64,000 nucleotides of DNA from Setoptus koraiensis (taxonomy: Eukaryota; Animalia; Arthropoda). Numbering within the stretch: the stretch's first letter is position 1; each line of letters begins with the position of its first letter. The stretch is taken from assembly GCA_048013815.1 (NCBI GenBank), contig CM106585.1, positions 7,254,001-7,318,000 of the forward strand, read 5' to 3'. The notes below the pieces were generated by a model. It was not told the DNA's origin, made no database searches, and was given only the letters and a program-made list of their open reading frames with translations. Shown here piece by piece: positions 1,096 through 64,000 of the stretch. The translations under genes were made by a program, and so were the position numbers.

Positions 1096-4000
1096 CAAAT
1101 TGCTAGTAAGCAGTGACAAGTTGCTGAAGAGCCGTCACGGGACTCAAAAGTCAAATATGGCGCCAATATTTGCGAAAAAGTTTGCGTCACATTTTAGACA
1201 AACCGCACATCCGTCCAACAACGCGACTAGCCTAGTTTCACTAGGTAAGCTTGTTACACCAATTCGGGTTCGTAATCATCACCATCGGCTCACCTGTCGT
1301 AGACTATGCGATGGGGCTCGCTGACAGTTTAGCCACCATATCGCACCCAACTGACAGCTTGATAGTTGGTGGCAAGCGCGAAACTGTGTCCGATGGACAC
1401 AAGTCATTTGTGACAAGCGGCGGCGACTGGTCGTCGAGTCGCGTCTCGCCGAGTGTCGCAATTGTTGTCCGTGCTTACATGCACCTTATAAGGTGTCGCT
1501 TGGGCTTGGCCGGAGTGTTTGTTTATGCTGCCAACAAGAAATGTTCGAGATTCTCAAAAAGCGAATATTTATGATGCTTTGCATCGTGCTATTCACGACA
1601 GCACGATCATGACCATCATGATGACCATGATGACGACGATGAAGTTGTTTAGACTAACAATGTAACTGACATCCAATGGGAAATGGCGATAAATAAATGT
1701 TTATTGCTATTTATCGCCAGGCGGTGCGCAGCCCAGAAACACTTTTGCTGTCGAAGCAAACACTTGTGGCTGTTGCAACAAGTCAAGGCTATTGTATGGC
1801 GATAATAATGATAATCTTGTATCTGTTGTGATGTTTGTGTTAGGTGAAGCGAAGTAAGCTCCTTCTATCTGTGTTGCACGCATACTAATATATTCGGCTC
1901 ACTTTTCGGCTGGCCAGCTCCTCGAGAGAGAAGCGTCCTCGCGAGAGAGGGAGAGAGAGAGAGAGAGAGAGCCTCTCGGACGCAAGCGGTCGGACAGGGC
2001 GACAATAGCTTATTAGTTGCCACGCAAAAAAGCCATCATTTTATGTTGTCAGACAAACAAATATTACAACATGTCAATGCGTACAAATACATCCTTGTGT
2101 GTTTGTTTGCTTCTGGTGTTGCTGCGCAGCGTCATTGTCCGACAATGGCCACCGTTTATTGTGTGATATATGATATACGACGACACCGACTAGTTGCTGG
2201 TGTCGCTGTTGCGCAACCACTGTTCTTTCTGTTTATATATGGCCAAACTGCCGAATAATAACCAACTTTGTTGTTCTTGCCGAATATATGCCACTAATTG
2301 AGTACAGTGCAGTGGCCACTCTAACAGCTCGACACAACAACAAGCACCAACAGAACAGATTAACCATCGCCAACGACTACACATACGATAGCCACCATCT
2401 TGTCAATCTTGTGTTTGCCTGGCCCAACCTGACAACTGGCCATTCCGAGGGGCACCAGCGCTCGTTTCAGCCAATTTCGTTTCGGTTACCTTGCAGTCAG
2501 ATTGAGATTAACAGTTGACTCTATACGTTACGAGTCTATAATGTGAATTGACTGATTGAATCGCCTGAGAAATCTCTAGCCAACAATATTTAGCAAGCGT
2601 GTGCAAATTGTGCAATACACATACACTGTTGGAGTACGAATTACACAAAATTTGCAACCTCGCAAATTGTGCCATCTTCATTATATCTCATTGAACTTTT
2701 GCCTGTATACATACCCTCTGCTTATATGGTGCATATATGGTCTATCTGGCTGGCAAATGATAACAACAAGTGCACTACACAACAATTAATTAGCTTAAGG
2801 AATGCGAATGCCAATCTTGATCTTTACCAGAGAGCCAATGATTAGTGGGAAAAGAATATCACGGACTCAAGTGATTATTGCAAATGAATCTTTTGTGCTA
2901 GTGCCGCAAACATCTTAATCACTGTGTGATCATGATTGAGATGAGATTATAATCATCATTATCATTGTCTTGTCGTTAGTGTAGGCACACTCGGTCTAGG
3001 TCGTCGGTGTTGTTGTTGCTGTTGTTGTTGTTGTTGCTGCTGTTGCACTTGTGGCGCTTGTTGCGCCGCAAAGAGAATGAAATGATAGTAATAGGGAGCA
3101 GCATATGTGGATCATCATGTGCAACACCATAACACACCAGATAAGAGATCCACAAACAGCAACAACAACAACAACAACAACAATACTAACTAGACAGAGA
3201 TCATCGTCCAGCCAATTGGTGCTCTATGGGTGCCCAAGTGAACTTGACTTGTGTGGCTTCCAATGCCCACAAATACCACCGATACACACCGAGTGGTAGT
3301 GAAACAACAACGTTGGCGTACACTTGTTGCGTCGTATGTGTGCTGTTGCAATCGTGTGTCCAATCAACCATCAACTGTATAAAAGATGGCGGTAATTAAA
3401 CGGCCGGCCAATATGTTTGGCGCCAGATATCTTTCAATTAGCTTCCATTTAGCCAACTCAATCAATAGACAGATTAGCAATTCACAATGGTGCATGAGAC
3501 GAACCTCCTGCAAGAACAACCGGTGTGTGTGTTGTTGCCTCAATGGAAACCTCGGCGTCTCGTAACAATATTTAATTTGGAATTTGAAATCGCTCGCCGG
3601 TGTGTGTACAATCCATCATTACCAACCTGACAAACTGCGACTATTAGATGCATTGGACGTATTAGATGCACCAGAGATGGATAATAATCGTGAAGGAACA
3701 GAGCGAGAGAGAGACAACCAGTTTGCATCGTGATTTAACTTGATTGATCTAGTTTCCCTCTTGTTCCCTCCTATTTGCGTTCGCTCTCTATTATTATACC
3801 GCCTACATTGCTCTAATAGTAATCCTACCTTTGGCAATATCATCATGATCACACTGATGACAGTGTGTGTATATGCAGACGCACAAACACTGAAAATAGT
3901 TTTGGGCAAAGTGTAAGTGAGTGATCAATCATATCATCAAGAAATGAAGATTCTTGCGAGATTTCAGATCCACTTCCACTTGTTGATGTTGTTATATTGT

Positions 4001-4499: not shown

Positions 4500-5863
4500 A
4501 CGGTATCCCATAGCAGATGCTGAGATAACGATGATGGCAATAACACGGGTGTAGTAGTGCTAAATCCCTATTGATTAGTTTCTTTATCCTATCTTGCCTC
4601 TAGAGTTGCCAGTTCCATGTCAAATAGGTGCCCATGTTCTTAGGTTGCTATTCGTCGGCTGGTTCGTTCGTTCGTTTGTTTGTTTGTTTGTGTGTGTTAT
4701 AGCTATTGTAGTATGTTATATATGTAAACAAAATGGAGCGGAATGGAGCTTCGTTTTGAAAATGATTGATCATTTAATCATTGATGCACAACAAGTTTAT
4801 AATTATCAATTAGAACAAGTGAAGGTGCTGCCAATCAGCGGCGATCATGGTGGCTAGCAAGCGTGCATTATATATACTGTATTTTCTGTATATATTTCAT
4901 CATCATTGTTACAAAGATCGACAACGATCAAGCATACACAAACAATTTGTACATGTGTAGGGTTGCTGCTATTTATCTGCTTGAATAAATAACCACCACA
5001 ACTACTGACAACTAACCACTTTTTGCTGTTGCTGTTGTTGCTACTGCTGTCAAACATCCAAACCAATCGCATATCGGCAATATATTGGCTTGGTAAAAGA
5101 ATCGGCTTCTTGGTTTTCTTGAAAAACTGTATCAATCACAATTGTACATGACTGGCAAGCGTGCCAACTGATCGAGTGTCTTGAAATAGATCAAAATAAC
5201 ACAAATGCATGTCCATGATCAATGAAGATGAACAATGAGTCACACATGTTAAATGCATAAACACCAAACCACGATGCCACCCAAACGTTTTCACGAACAA
5301 TAACACTTGGAATGCCACTCAATCTCCAGGGGTCCAATCGCTAGTCCAGTTGATGTTGTTGCTGTTGTTGTTCGCATTGCTGTTGGTCCATCTTTGCATC
5401 ACTGCTCCATCACAGTCGGCCTCCGGGGTGCTGTCATCTTGTTTTGCCACTTCTTCTTTTTTCTTTTTCTAAAACAAAGCAAGCTCATCATCATAGATCG
5501 AGATTGAATAACATGGTGAGCTTAGCATAATTATTAACACACCCAATTAGATAAATCTTGACCCATGTTTTCGAAAGAAACTATGACAAACAAATCTGCC
5601 ATAGGCAAACGCGCGCCATAAAATTTGTGCAGCTTGCGCATTATCTCACGACGCACGTTTCTCTTTCTCTGTGCGTGTTTTCTTTTTACGAATCATCTGA
5701 TGGTTAAATCACCACGTTGCTGTTTATTTTTTATTATTTCTTCGTGATTTATTACATCCATGCTGTAGACCCCATATTTATCACCATATTTAATTATAAC
5801 AATGTCACCATTAATCACCTGATTGATTACTCGATCATAATTACTGCTGGTGGCTTGTTAACA

Positions 5864-6628
5864 ATGGACACAAACACCATTCATATTATTCTTGCCAAGG
5901 CCAACAGTTGTCAATGGAACAATGACGATTATGTTATCTGTGATATTAAAATTAGAGCAATGGATCCAAAAACCATACAACAAAACCGTCATACAGATTA
6001 TCAACAAAAAGCCAATCACAATATTGTTGTAACGAGCACCATTATCGACTCTCACACCCTATTCAAGGTAATACACGAGCTGAGATGTTCGCAAAAGTTT
6101 CGCAATGGCTTGGCCAGAAAGGTGCGCCACGATAGGCAATTTAAATTTGGACAAGGCGTTAATGGCGACAATTATCATCACGTTGAGGTGGCCACGGTGC
6201 TAGTCCAAGCCAATACGGTCCTACCTATCGATTATAACTGGACCGTGAGAGTGCTAAATGTTGCATTAGGCAGGGTGATTCTGGAGGATTGTTATTCATG
6301 GCTCTCAACATTAGGCGGAGCATTCTCGTCGCTCGGAGAGGACTTCGATGAATTCTCAATTAAAGCAGGCCTATTAGCTGCTCAAAAACAATTTAAATTG
6401 GCCCTGCTTCTCGGAGACGAAAGATTGTTGGCCAAATGTCATTTATTTGTGTCATTATCATTATGTCAACTTGGCAGAAAAAGACAATGCGTGAGACATC
6501 TCAGGAATGTAGTCATTCCATATCTTAGTTCTTTGCCCAAAATTGATAATGTATTGAAGAATATGTATCTGCACATTTTATTTAGATTGAAAAATCCATT
6601 CAAGCAAAAATTTATAGATTCAAAATAG
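5864..6628 (+). CDS. DUF4807-family protein (C. elegans F58A4.6-like), apparently intronless
   Basis: C-terminal block EDCYSWLSTLGGAFSSLGE...KQFKLALLLGDERLLAKCHLFVSLSLCQLG matches the family as I recall it. First in-frame ATG is 5864; the ORF track starts at an upstream TTG. Confidence 0.7.
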   Translation: MDTNTIHIILAKANSCQWNNDDYVICDIKIRAMDPKTIQQNRHTDYQQKANHNIVVTSTIIDSHTLFKVIHELRCSQKFRNGLARKVRHDRQFKFGQGVNGDNYHHVEVATVLVQANTVLPIDYNWTVRVLNVALGRVILEDCYSWLSTLGGAFSSLGEDFDEFSIKAGLLAAQKQFKLALLLGDERLLAKCHLFVSLSLCQLGRKRQCVRHLRNVVIPYLSSLPKIDNVLKNMYLHILFRLKNPFKQKFIDSK

Positions 6629-8497: not shown

Positions 8498-8756
8498 GTG
8501 TTGCGGGCGGATTGCCGCCCAGGGCGGGCATGCCCAATTTTGAGCGGCTTCGGGCGGCTTGGGCGGCGAATTTAGGGGCCCCAGTTGCATCAAATAGCCA
8601 GAATCATTTACAACTTGTTGGTTTGTACTATCTAAAACGGAAATATTTAGATCTCACCCAATATTACTAAACTATTCATCGCCCCAAGCCGCTCAGCCGC
8701 CCAAAACCGCCCATAATTGGGCATTCCCAGCTTGGGCGGCAATCTGCCCGCAGCAC
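8498..8756. mobile_element. MITE-like foldback element: ~75-bp GC-rich imperfect inverted arms around a ~100-bp AT-rich spacer
   Basis: Left arm gtgttgcgggcggattgccgcccagggcgggcatgcccaattttgagcggc... aligns with the reverse complement of the right arm gtgctgcgggcagattgccgcccaagctgggaatgcccaattatgggcggt... at roughly 80% by eye. No clear target-site duplication found. Confidence 0.55.
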
Positions 8757-59393: not shown

Positions 59394-59870
59394 TCATAGT
59401 TGTACAATGCAATTGGCTTGCTTCGGCGGCTGCGTCGCTGCTGCCGGCTTGCCTGCCTGTCTGGGGCCCTTATTCGATGATTGCCTTTTGAATGACGATT
59501 CAATTTGGCAACGCAGTCGTGAAAAGGTGCTCCTGGAACAGCCAAGCTGCAGCTTATTTATCACGTCACAATCCTTATCCATGGGATTGGCTTTTATATG
59601 GGCCGTGATTCTGTCCTTGATATCCATGTTGAACATTTTGGGTCTACCCGCCGACTTGAGATGAGCGATTCTGTTCTCTTCCTCGAACGCCTTCAATATG
59701 GCGTATATAGATGAGCGAGATCGCTGAACCATGCTGGATATAGTCTTAATTGGTGTATTGTTTTTCCAAAGTTTTATTATCTTTATTCGCTCGGCCTCGG
59801 TGGTGCGATACGTTCGCGGCACCGCGTAACAATGGTCCATTGTTATCACATCCAGCATCTCGCACACCAT
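59394..59870 (-). CDS. Tc1/mariner-type paired-like bipartite HTH DNA-binding domain without catalytic DDE domain (transposase relic or domesticated gene; possibly the last exon of a spliced gene)
   Basis: RTTEAERIKIIKLWKNNTPIKTISSMVQRSRSSIYAILK...KSAGRPKMF...RITAHIKANP...CSRSTFSRL follows the Tc1 PAI-GRPR-RED pattern. The ORF stops ~35 aa later, and no terminal inverted repeats were seen. Confidence 0.72.
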   Translation of the reverse strand: MVCEMLDVITMDHCYAVPRTYRTTEAERIKIIKLWKNNTPIKTISSMVQRSRSSIYAILKAFEEENRIAHLKSAGRPKMFNMDIKDRITAHIKANPMDKDCDVINKLQLGCSRSTFSRLRCQIESSFKRQSSNKGPRQAGKPAAATQPPKQANCIVQL

Positions 59871-59912: not shown

Positions 59913-60020
59913 AATCGTACAGTCTAATAATCGCGCAGTCTGGTGATCGTATAGTCTAATGATCGTATAGTCTAGTGATTGTGTAGTCTAATAATCGTAC
60001 AGTCTGATGATCGTGTAGTG
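59913..60020. repeat. 16-bp degenerate minisatellite (RATCGTRYAGTCTRRT) x~6.7
   Basis: Direct reading; immediately upstream of the HTH ORF. Confidence 0.85.
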
Positions 60021-60216
60021 TCGTTGTCGTGTGTATGCGTAGTTGGGACATTCAAGGATATTTTGAGGGATAATCGAAAGTTTTTACAAGGCTACACCAA
60101 CAAACTGCTGCTTGTTCACAACAATTCACTTGACAGGAGTACGTATAATTGCAACCAACATTGGGCACCGGCCACCAGTATTGGCCCATCAATCACGGCG
60201 CGCGTCACTGGCACTC

Positions 60217-60276
60217 GGATATTTGTTGGAATATTTGTTGGGATATTCGTTGGGATATTCGTTGGGATATTTGTTT
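60217..60276. repeat. 12-bp tandem repeat (GRATATTYGTTG) x5
   Basis: Direct reading; gives the IFVG repeat in an artefactual ORF. Confidence 0.9.
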
Positions 60277-61160
60277 ACACAGGTCGTGACAATGATGACG
60301 ATTGCAATTTTAAAAATGGCAGTGATTTATCTAACAGAATGTTATTTTTGCGGCTTGTTGATGCAGCTTGCGCAACGATTGTATGTTTGTCCGGCCGTGT
60401 CGACTCGCAAACTGTTGTTTTGTCAAACTGTCCCGATCACCAACCGATCAAATGGCTTCAAGTGGCTGCGTTTCCGGCCTGCGAGCAGCAGTTGTTTATA
60501 CAGCGATGCATTGCATGCTCCGGATAAACAAAATGCCGGATAATACTGGCCGTACGCTACTACAGTTACTACGAGCACTACATTTATCAGAGTTTATCAG
60601 TGCTACATGAGGTAGCACTGACAGTTGTGAGTAGGCAGTATTTGTAGCAGATAAAGTTGCCAAGTTGCAACGTTGCAAGCACGTTGCATCGCGTTGTGCG
60701 ATCTCCATCTTATGTAACGCGCGTCAAACACGCCTCACAAGAGACAGTCAGAGTGAAATATCCGGGAAATTCAAACGCGCTGGACAGTTGTTACTGGCGG
60801 CGTGATCTGACCACGGAAACTCACAGCGACAATTGCACAACTGTCCATTTTGGGGTCCATTGCGTTGATATTTTCGTTGAACATTTGTTGCAAATGGGTG
60901 ATCGTGGCAGCACACATCGTGCAAGCCAGCAAACGATTCGCCAGCAGCTGACAACTTCATCGCATTTTCTCAACATGTGAGGCCATCTGTATACTGGACG
61001 CTCAAAAGTGAGATCCAAAACATCACTATATAAGCGTAAAAATAACAATAATAAATTTTTAGATGGTGATTTAATTTCATGATTTAATTTCTTGTGTCGT
61101 AATCGACATTGGCACAAGATAGTAAAGTTTAATGTTTAACTCTACAAGTCGGGGGCATAG

Positions 61161-61343
61161 TTCTAGACTCATTAATTGATCAAATCGAAAAGGTTTACAG
61201 AATGAACTACAGACATGAATGGGATAAACCCGAATGGAAACGCAAAATTAAATTAAATTGGCGTTTCCATCCGGGTTTATCCCATTCGTGTTTGTAGTTT
61301 ATCTTATAAACCTTTTCGATTTGATCAATTAATGAATCTAGAA
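61161..61343. other. Long inverted repeat: 83-bp arms (61161-61243, 61261-61343), 17-nt AT loop; candidate hairpin RNA
   Basis: Arms align without gaps at 75/83 identity; all 8 differences are transitions. Confidence 0.9.
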
Positions 61344-61449
61344 ATATGCTCCTGACGTGTAGAGTGTGAAGAATGTTCTTTGATTGACTTCCTTCATTCG
61401 TCGGAGAGGGTTTGGGAGTTCTTTTTCCTTCCTGTTTCTTCTTTTCCAT
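61207..61449 (-). CDS. Hypothetical 80-aa ORF (or first exon) running through the hairpin
   Basis: ATG in strong context (caaccATGG) with a CRE ~160 bp upstream; no recognisable homology. Confidence 0.3.
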   Translation of the reverse strand: MEKKKQEGKRTPKPSPTNEGSQSKNILHTLHVRSIFLDSLIDQIEKVYKINYKHEWDKPGWKRQFNLILRFHSGLSHSCL

Positions 61450-61608
61450 GGTTGCAAATGGTCCTAGGCAAACCGATTATCTGTATCAAAAGAGTGCATA
61501 TCATCTTCTAATTGAATAATGCTAATTAACATCAACGCGCGCGCGCGCGCACGGTTTACTTCTGCTTACAAATCAGGTGGAATGCGATGCGATTGATTAA
61601 GTTATTGA

Positions 61609-61640
61609 TGACGTCACAGTTTAAATATTTCGTGACGTGA
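61609..61640. promoter_or_regulatory. CRE/ATF sites (TGACGTCA at 61609-61616; TGACGTGA at 61633-61640)
   Basis: Perfect CRE palindrome plus a variant site, next to a (GC)n run, upstream of the 61449 ATG. Function is inferred. Confidence 0.4.
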
Positions 61641-64000
61641 TGTCAATTATGTCTCAGAGCGAGTTGTTTCCAAATTGGAAATTCAAATGATACATTCGAA
61701 TAGATGAAAAAAACAACAGGCGCTCTACAGATTGCTAATCGACATCACTACACGTAGCAGAATTAGTAATAATGTTTGCGAGAGTTAGATGGCGCCAAGC
61801 AGCACAGCAGGCAATGTTTGTCCAGTGCCTGTTTAGCTAATGGGGCCCACAACACAAGTTGGCCCCAAAAGTTGGCCCAGAGGTGAGCGCCAATTTTAAA
61901 CGAAGCAAGCGCCAAGTTTGTTCGGTGAGGTTTGGAATGGGGCCCCGCTGGCCTCATTGTGTTGACCAGACAGCAACAGACAAAGGATTGCTGGTCGGCG
62001 GTGTATAACGTGATTGTCGCCAGTGCATGTATATTATTATGTAATTGTGCGAATGTGTCGCGCCGCCGGCAAATGTTACATTAAGATGAAGATTATTCAA
62101 TCTCGATCGCACTAATACGCTCTAGTAAGCACGCATGTTTTAGCTGTGTAGGCCAAAAGTAAACTCGCTCGGAATAATAATATAAAAAACATAATTATAA
62201 GATTAGCTGTGGCGCCCAGATGTCGTGTGCGATGACCCTTCGCTTGGCTGATCATCTATCGTTCCATTTGCGATACATTTATAATGGCATGTGTCTCATG
62301 TGCTGCATCTCACAGGAACAACACGCCGGAGAAAAAAGAAAGCAGCTTGATAAAGCTGGCTAAAACGCCCCGCTCTGTCTGTTTATTTTGCCAATTTTTA
62401 TTGTCAATCGCCAATGGAAAGTTGCAATTTTCGGAGGCCCGCCATTCAGCTAGCCACTGCCCAGATGTGTCTGTCTATCCAACCTCTTGTCTATAATTAA
62501 GCGTTGGGGCCCATTTTTTGCGCTGGGGCCGCCTGCCTAATGAATGATGTTTGGCACTGTTTACTTTTGGCCGTTTGATGTGCACACCAGCAAACAGCGA
62601 ATTCTGGCCAAAAAACAAAGCACTCACAAACCATTGTCAGCCACACAAACCAAAAACCAATTCGAGAATACTTTTCCAGAATATTCGCTCGTGGTGGCTC
62701 GCCTTTGAGGGGCGATTCGGGGGGCCATTTGAGGGGCCGTTCGAGGCCCGCCGACTGTCGCGGCCCGAAAGAACCGCTCGCCGAAATATCCGGCCACCAA
62801 ACGACGATGCACACGATGCGCCATCCCGTGGGCGATTTGCAATTTGCGGGGGCGCCCAGAGCGAACAAACATTGACAAATTGCCAGTTTAAACCAACAAC
62901 AACAACAACAAAATATTATCTGTTTGAATAAATTGTGTGTGTGTGTGCTGAAATTTGGGGCCCGACGGCGCCAAATATGGCGCCGGTGTGGCACGATTGG
63001 ATAATTGTTGTCGCCATTGTTGTTGTTGCTGTTTGTGTCCGTTGTTTCTGGGTAGCGCGGCCTTTCGGGCCCAAACTTTGGGGTGCCAAAAGGCTGATAA
63101 ATGATGATTGTTTAAAGAGTTGCATCACAATGTCTGGATGGAGCTGGCGAGCTGCGTGCGCATACCAGTTGTTTGCTCATTTGTTGTTGCTGCCTCCAAA
63201 CATCTGGCTCCATATTTGGGGGGCCCGGCGCGCCAACAATATCGCGGCCATAACAAATTGCCAAATGTGCCTCGTGCGACTTGGGCCCCACTACATACTA
63301 CTGCACACAAATACGTTTGCTGCCTGCTATGATATACGTATAAATGTTACGATATGCATGCCCTATCATAACATAAATGTTCATGCGAGCACAATGCCAG
63401 CTATACGAGCCAATGTGAATGCAAACAATAATAATATTCACCATTATTAGCGTTCATTAGGACCGTTAGCTGGCGCCGGCGACCCCTCCGATTCCAATAT
63501 CCACATGTGCAGCGTCCAATGTGCGTTGGGGCCCACAACTTATGGGGCCCCGCGACACATTGGATATGTTGGGTGGGCCTGGCAAAGGCGCCCATCTCAA
63601 TGGCTGGCGCGTCGTTGGCTTGCACAGAGGAACAGTCTGGACAGATTACGGCGACGTTATTTCATTTCATCCGCGGCTGAATTTCAGTTTAAATTTCAGT
63701 TTCAAGATTGCATGCTCGCGATCGCATTTTCGCTAATGGGCCAAGCGAACAATATAGATAATAAGACGCACGGCCAGCAACAGAGAAATGTGGCTGGCTG
63801 GTTTGTTTGTTTGTTTGTCTCAGCCACGACATCATCGTTATCGTATGTTGACCGGGCGGAAATGGGCCCCAACAAACGAGCAAGTTTTCGGCGCCAGATA
63901 ATTCTGGCTGCGGGCTCATTGGAGATTGGGGCGATTGATGATCGCGCACGACGATCAGATATGATGTGGCCGGTTGCTGTTGTTATTGCGTTATATTGCG

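Follow-up and report, generated by a model that had tools for sequence, protein, structure and literature searches.

The window analysed here, a 64,000-nt stretch of the Setoptus koraiensis genome (assembly GCA_048013815.1, contig CM106585.1), contains a nearly perfect palindrome. A repeat search delimited two arms of 113 nt, at 61139-61251 and 61253-61365, which are 88% complementary and have 1 nt between them, and the whole palindrome spans 227 bp. A minus-strand ORF of 80 aa (61207-61449) begins with an ATG at 61449, encodes first a K/E/P-rich leader and then the right arm, and runs on into the left arm. The features of the locus, in window coordinates, are as follows:

61517..61669, plus strand: upstream module of 150 bp, low-copy, with TGACGTCA and a CACGTGA-like motif; candidate shared or bidirectional promoter
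61366..61449, minus strand: unique 5' coding flank, consisting of the ATG (61447-61449) and 28 K/E/P-rich codons, which aligns with intact family N-termini
61253..61365, minus strand: right arm, the sense copy of codons 29-66 of a truncated family gene (FLD...HEW..P.WKR segment of the N-domain), as judged by repeat search, translation and alignment to the family and to P0084-P0086
61252, no strand: palindrome centre, 1 unpaired nt; the predicted terminal loop is ~6 nt and AT-rich
61139..61251, plus strand: left arm, the inverted copy of the right arm, with the same frame open on the plus strand; it stands in place of the remainder of the gene

The published S. koraiensis assembly comprises two chromosomes with an N50 of 24.53 Mb, assembled from CLR reads with Flye (PMC11920263). 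The genome searched here totals 48.8 Mb in two sequences of 24,221,962 and 24,533,333 bp, and it is intron-poor, with single ORFs encoding a CD36 protein of 534 aa, a P-type ATPase of 1305 aa and an otopetrin of 503 aa. The named relative of a neighbouring GKAP protein (gene at 50.3-52.5 kb of the window) was from an oribatid mite, and one PIWI paralogue was 40% identical to a protein of Halotydeus destructor, its best named match, and 94% identical to that of a sister species, with which protein identity ranges from 81 to 94%.

Folding of the palindrome gave a single long stem on either strand. The minimum free energy was -156.4 kcal/mol for the plus strand (shuffle mean -52, z = -22.5) and -145.2 kcal/mol for the minus strand (shuffle mean -43, z = -23.1), and 0 of 200 shuffles folded as stably as the hairpin itself, so that the folding check proposed in the original prediction came out as expected, with one long stem on each strand and z-scores of about -22. 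The 113-bp stem, 88% paired, is an extended near-perfect duplex much longer than a pre-miRNA, as is typical of hairpin RNAs (hpRNAs). The prediction had described a hairpin of 83 bp with gap-free inverted arms; the arms are indeed gap-free, but the extent was underestimated, as they reach 113 nt.

The two arms match at 99 of 113 positions, and the 14 differences consist of 10 transitions and 4 transversions. Within the 83-nt core the earlier counts were reproduced: there are 8 differences, all of them transitions, giving 4 G.U and 4 A.C pairs on either strand, and they fall at codon positions 1, 2 and 3 in the numbers 0, 3 and 5, with 3 synonymous changes. The excess of third-position changes had been taken as a hint of coding constraint. 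An open frame of 37 codons is kept in both full-length arms, but over these arms the differences are distributed 5/3/6 among the three codon positions, only 3 of 14 are synonymous, and 10 of 37 residues are changed, and with this the hint disappears. The pattern over the full arms, at a divergence of approximately 12%, is what neutral drift gives, and the arms show no coding constraint. Mismatches able to form G.U or A.C pairs number 6 and 4 on one strand and 4 and 6 on the other, which shows no preference for G.U on either strand.

The genome was searched with the hairpin peptide and then with the first match obtained, a search that recovered a protein family with a common N-terminal domain (N-domain). 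A profile of this domain matched the two window arms with E = 5e-12 and 8e-11, and a profile search of the whole genome gave approximately 11 family loci. Between the window arms and the family, protein-level identity of approximately 33-35% is all that remains. The intact architecture is represented by P0084 (462 aa), which consists of a K-rich leader, the N-domain, a linker and a complete Ulp1/C48 domain (Pfam E = 5e-20), and which is 49% identical to one truncated copy in this genome; the same architecture is partly visible in locus L037. The sole intact copy of the N-domain that is not in a hairpin is a 275-aa ORF at C1:17,731,148, approximately 3 kb from the youngest hairpin; C1:17,729,738 and C1:21,517,590 are also counted among the intact members. 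A HMMER search of 1.84 billion representative proteins yielded only 3 further members, all singletons from sequencing-run assemblies. Pfam returned nothing for the hairpin ORF or for the 275-aa intact member, a word-based homologue search with the Ulp1-like ORF gave no match, the ESM Atlas gave no usable match, and exact look-ups of eight ORFs found 0 of 8 in the collection searched. An AlphaFold model of the 275-aa member, made without an alignment, had a pLDDT of 37 and was unusable. Judged by these searches, the family appears to be narrow and specific to eriophyoid mites, combining a K-rich leader, the N-domain and an Ulp1/C48 protease.

In a joint alignment the window minus-strand ORF lines up from its Met, including the K-rich leader, with the N-termini of P0084, P0085 and the L008 ORF. 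From this correspondence with intact N-termini, the right arm and its 84-nt flank are identified as the 5' end of a family gene, still in its original place, and the left arm as codons 29-66 copied in inverted orientation; the rest of the gene is gone. TBLASTN detected no family homology on the minus strand past the left arm. Only the leader and the N-domain's first third are kept in the window, the C48 part being absent, and the copy appears to be a fragment of a family member and not a functional member. The proposal that the hairpin arose by inverted duplication of a protein-coding fragment is therefore upheld: the arms match the N-domain, the flank matches the family N-terminus, and genome searches, profile and alignment all lead to the N-domain Ulp1/C48 family. 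The palindrome is genuine, ancient and present in one copy, and it arose by inverted duplication of the 5' end of a gene from a lineage-specific Ulp1-like family.

The module at 61517-61669 sits 68-220 bp upstream of the ATG and has 3 copies in the genome, which are 89-94% identical. The other two copies (L062:1501-1654 and L063:1501-1622), found at C1:10.226 Mb and C1:21.519 Mb, each lie directly upstream of a 'C-type' relative of the family. In one hairpin ORF, C-type sequence adjoins N-domain sequence without interruption, and at C1:17.73 Mb the two occur as a pair of divergently oriented genes. Conservation of the 150-bp module exceeds that of the coding DNA next to it, and it may be regarded as a candidate promoter. 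The C-type gene of L062 was itself observed to be a 5' fragment ending in a short inverted repeat of 35 nt.

Between 52.5 and 64 kb of the window there is no long conserved ORF except a Tc1-like DNA-binding ORF (59394-59870), which lies 1.3 kb from the hairpin. Two tandem arrays were seen between this ORF and the hairpin, at 59914-60046 (16-nt period, approximately 8 units) and at 60217-60275 (12-nt period, approximately 5 units). Apart from the hairpin, the 64-kb window has a single non-simple inverted repeat whose arms reach 60 nt or more and whose spacer is short, at 8498-8756. Its 70-nt arms (8498-8567 and 8688-8756) are 83% identical, are separated by a 120-nt spacer and are GC-rich, with GGGCGG-type motifs, and no relation to Ulp1-like sequence was seen.

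The original prediction had further suggested that the hairpin silences its own transcript or a paralogue. A search of the 48.8-Mb genome with the palindrome DNA, which was expected to reveal the parental gene, instead showed the sequence to be single-copy at the DNA level, with no second DNA match to the 227-bp palindrome. Among the family loci that were fetched, no near-identical target was found; the best 21-mer had 4-5 mismatches, which is the background level, and the longest exact match was 12 nt. From the lack of a second DNA match and the 4-5 mismatches of the best 21-mer it follows that no present trans target is visible. The extensive complementarity to target genes elsewhere that characterizes hpRNAs was thus not seen in these searches, and silencing of its own transcript or of a paralogue by the window hairpin, while still a putative function, is weakened for this locus. 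The feature that speaks most for the proposed silencing is one visible only in the wider genome, the convergent, promoter-proximal layout of hairpins at about nine family loci.

When the other family loci were analysed in the same way, an inverted duplication was found to overlap the homologous segment at about 9 of the approximately 11 loci, with arm identities ranging from 100% to about 70%:

C1:17.728 Mb: arms of 353 nt, 100% identical, joined to a 736-nt, 100% identical inverted copy of the upstream neighbour gene
C2:5.889 Mb: arms of 264 nt, 98% identical, 33-nt loop
C2:9.594 Mb: arms of 116 and 55 nt, 84-92% identical (the 116-nt arm 92%)
C2:21.821 Mb: arms of about 160 nt, 87-94% identical
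Window: arms of 113 nt, 88% identical
C1:9.904 Mb: arms of about 130 nt, 74-85% identical
C2:21.484 Mb: arms of about 360 nt, 73-81% identical
C2:3.300 Mb: arms of about 190 nt, 69-77% identical
C2:0.624 Mb: fragment hairpin

All clear cases are convergent: each gene keeps its promoter-proximal 5' part, the distal end of which is repeated after it in inverted orientation, and its 3' part is lost. This is the sole arrangement that lets the parental promoter transcribe a hairpin RNA. A different stretch of the protein is covered by each hairpin, with no common termini, which indicates independent events and not shared transposon ends. Three of the hairpins are 90-96% identical to one another at the DNA level, and hairpin loci must therefore also have been copied to new sites. 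A TCTAAGAGCGC motif shared upstream of these three was set aside, being explained by their DNA relatedness and not occurring in the right orientation in the window. The background was estimated from approximately 144 kb of loci taken for unrelated reasons, a modest and non-random sample, which contained approximately 4 comparable inverted repeats; at this density fewer than 0.3 hairpins would be expected by chance over the family segments. The presence of similar fold-backs of different ages in at least 8 other family copies suggests either a recurrent birth of silencing hairpins or a recurrent route of gene breakage.

A test of G.U against A.C asymmetry across the family gave no consistent preference, and when the presumed sense strands were summed G.U mismatches were fewer than A.C. 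Transitions and transversions numbered 37 and 11 in the four younger diverged hairpins (88-98% identity) and approximately 77 and 68 in the three oldest. The hairpin at C2:21.484 Mb had 31 G.U and 13 A.C mismatches on the plus strand, an excess that is either a strand-asymmetric mutation signal or a result of selection for pairing on that strand. The youngest structure, at C1:17,725,435-17,729,146 (L039:2435-6146), is a composite inverted duplication that is 100% identical throughout: Ulp1-like arms of 353 nt (L039:4599-4951 and 5059-5411) abut arms of 736 nt from the neighbour gene (2435-3170 and 5411-6146), and the Ulp1-like ORF is broken off just ahead of the catalytic Cys region. Either a double template switch happened here very recently or the composite is an artefact of CLR-read assembly.

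Inverted duplications were also seen at sites unrelated to the family. At C2:~1,546,100-1,546,700 (L024:2625-3218) an inverted repeat of 215 nt, 96-98% identical and with a 167-nt spacer, lies approximately 200 bp downstream of an intact PIWI-clade gene. At C2:~2,210,400-2,212,900 (L028:1459-3906) an N-terminally short Ago-like ORF of 643 aa is preceded by an inverted copy, approximately 530 nt long, of its own 5' part; this duplication is head-to-head and divergent, a polarity opposite to that of the Ulp1-family hairpins. A third repeat, at C2:~12,100,900-12,101,500 (L038:2406-3051), has 243-nt arms that are 98% identical, with a 161-nt spacer, and is found approximately 0.7 kb from a degenerate C48 fragment. 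Given these family-unrelated cases, the genome may be generally prone to fold-back or template-switch rearrangements.

Several explanations of the window hairpin have to be weighed. That it is a foldback transposon or MITE, formed by joining the two terminal inverted repeats of a mobile element, would account for a near-perfect palindrome with a tiny loop lying 1.3 kb from a Tc1-like DNA-binding ORF. The dispersed copies with target-site duplications (TSDs) that had been named as the mark of a MITE were looked for in the genome and at the flanks (...gtttaa | tgtgaa...), but the DNA is single-copy in 48.8 Mb and no TSD is present. The arms are moreover coding sequence of a host-like family whose hairpins cover different gene segments, and membership of such an element is effectively refuted. 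An assembly fold-back, for example from a palindromic PacBio CLR read, has practically no chance of being correct, for although the assembly was made from such reads with Flye and some other inverted repeats in this genome are 100% identical, an artefact would give identical arms and these differ at 14 of 113 positions. Taken together, the 12% difference between arms, the single copy and the lack of a TSD indicate that the structure is neither a MITE nor an assembly artefact. It is also very improbable that the locus makes some other product, whether a miRNA or structured RNA precursor of exceptional length or a genuine protein of 80 aa. A miRNA precursor was expected to pass the Rfam gathering threshold and to have a stem of approximately 30-35 bp or a documented extended architecture. 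Matches to several long plant miRNA hairpin families were obtained with Rfam, but every one was sub-threshold (the best, MIR8562, scored 81 against a threshold of 211 bits), reflecting generic long stems, and a nearly perfect stem of 113 bp is not Microprocessor-like (PMC12553114). The ORF at 61207-61449 does have an ATG and 80 open codons, but past the loop it reads into the antisense arm, and no coding constraint is seen in either arm.

A close rival to the silencing-hairpin reading is that the fold-backs are neutral wreckage, in which short local inverted duplications, produced by fold-back priming or template switching, truncate the genes of a dispensable family with fast turnover and then decay with no role in RNAi. 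We give this tentative explanation somewhat less than an even chance. It accommodates the unrelated inverted duplications, of which one of 215 nt lies beside the PIWI gene, one of 530 nt precedes the Ago-like ORF, one of 243 nt is at C2:12.10 Mb and one is at 8498-8756 of the window, and it accords with the youngest family event, whose two separate inverted segments of 353 and 736 nt, both 100% identical, are typical of template switching. The window arms, drifting neutrally with no G.U preference, and the lack of a target for the window hairpin are likewise as expected of wreckage. It explains less well why about 9 of 11 family loci are affected when the control density predicts fewer than 0.3, why the clear cases all have a promoter-compatible polarity while the unrelated Ago-like case is divergent, why hairpin loci were themselves copied to new sites, and why a conserved promoter-like module adjoins the window hairpin.

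Against this background, the convergent layout at about 9 of approximately 11 loci, with identities from 100% to approximately 70%, was read as a record of repeated hairpin births. The reading that we favour, with no more than middling conviction, is that hpRNA-like or Mu-killer-like silencing hairpins may have been born repeatedly from the family, and that the window would hold an old, orphaned one. The family gene lay on the minus strand and started at 61449. By fold-back or template switching, codons 29-66 were copied in inverted orientation just downstream and the rest of the gene was removed. The parental ATG, the 5' flank and the promoter-like module are still present upstream on the minus strand, and the retained parental promoter could then have produced one RNA folding as a 113-bp duplex. 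Dicer would be predicted to cut this duplex into small RNAs matching the parent family while the locus was young. By now the window locus is probably orphaned and decaying, and it would act at most on transcripts of its own locus. The neutral drift of its arms, the lack of a G.U preference and the lack of a trans target all count against the silencing reading, and the window hairpin taken alone is an old, probably inert member. A stronger form of the silencing reading, in which the Ulp1-like family has been locked in a long conflict with host RNAi, with hairpins born by 5'-retaining fold-back, silencing their relatives and then decaying, and with the window as a fossil, is in our judgement unlikely. 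If it were true, this would be the first arms race of the Dox/hpRNA type described outside Drosophila, in a group thought to have no canonical siRNA pathway.

The machinery that such hairpins would need was sought in the genome. Ten Piwi-domain genes were found, nearly every one an unbroken single ORF of 850-1150 aa; approximately 6 belong to the PIWI clade and 1 is Ago1-like, and of 3 further ones compared with solved structures at least 2 are divergent members of the AGO clade. Three Dicer-sized ORFs (1740-2141 aa) have two RNase III domains each, and there is one Drosha-sized ORF. No RdRP domain was found in the genome, by a search whose control was uninformative. The small-RNA gene set appears expanded for a genome of 49 Mb. 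These findings are in line with the eriophyoid mite Aculops lycopersici, in which the AGO1 and PIWI subfamilies are expanded, and there is no clear AGO2 or R2D2 and no RdRP (PMC7738191). The comparison with Drosophila Dicer-2 made in the original prediction does not apply here, the genome being that of an eriophyoid mite, a group reported to be without clear AGO2, R2D2 or RdRP (PMC7738191). Because Dicer-sized, AGO and PIWI genes are present, hairpin-RNA silencing is plausible; dicing of a long hairpin could plausibly take place in this mite, by a pathway that would differ from the Dicer-2/AGO2 pathway of Drosophila.

Among the known means by which animal genomes devise sequence-specific suppressors of selfish or dosage-sensitive genes, gene-derived hairpins are the clearest, and such loci have been worked out almost solely in Drosophila. 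In maize, Mu killer (Muk) arose by partial duplication of the MuDR 5' end in inverted orientation, and its hairpin transcript silences MuDR; its target is a transposon, and it is transcribed from a flanking promoter. The mite loci resemble Muk as naturally arisen inverted duplications of the 5' portion of a gene, which in Muk give a hairpin transcript acting against its own family, but the mite family is without transposon hallmarks and the parental promoter side is kept. Young plant miRNA genes also have an inverted-duplication origin, and mouse oocytes produce endo-siRNAs from inverted-repeat pseudogenes. As in both of these, a gene fragment has been duplicated in inverted orientation and the arms decay later; unlike young plant miRNA genes, the window locus shows no sign of a shift to one discrete small RNA, and its stem is still 113 bp. 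With MITEs and foldback elements it shares only the palindromic form and very short loop, differing from them in being single-copy, in having no TSD and in its coding arms. Young hpRNAs of D. simulans (hp-tHMG-solo, ballchen) arose when the 5' region of a gene was partly duplicated in inverted orientation, and in Drosophila multi-copy hpRNA families face Dox-type genes (PMC10317233). Like these, the mite hairpins are long near-perfect inverted repeats derived from a protein-coding gene, the 5' part and promoter side of which are kept, and they show repeated birth and dispersal from one fast-evolving, lineage-restricted family, with different ages coexisting. Unlike them, they occur in an eriophyoid mite lineage with no clear AGO2 or R2D2, the window hairpin has no complementary target, and the parent is an Ulp1-like protease family and not an HMG-box one.

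One small, lineage-specific mite family has undergone about nine independent hairpin conversions covering a wide range of ages, with intact members beside the youngest. If small RNAs arise from these hairpins, the family would provide a second, distant system in which to study the birth, dispersal and loss of suppressors, in animals with an siRNA pathway that is considered non-canonical. Should no small RNAs arise, the loci record a strong gene-killing mode of fold-back mutation that is relevant to the streamlining of mite genomes. A C48 domain was also observed in a different setting: the sequence at C2:644,940-648,443 (L033) is part of a 2543-aa open frame in which a Helitron-type helicase C-terminus and an endonuclease-like region are combined with a C48 domain. 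This frame represents a Helentron-like element, and it lies approximately 23 kb from one of the family hairpins.
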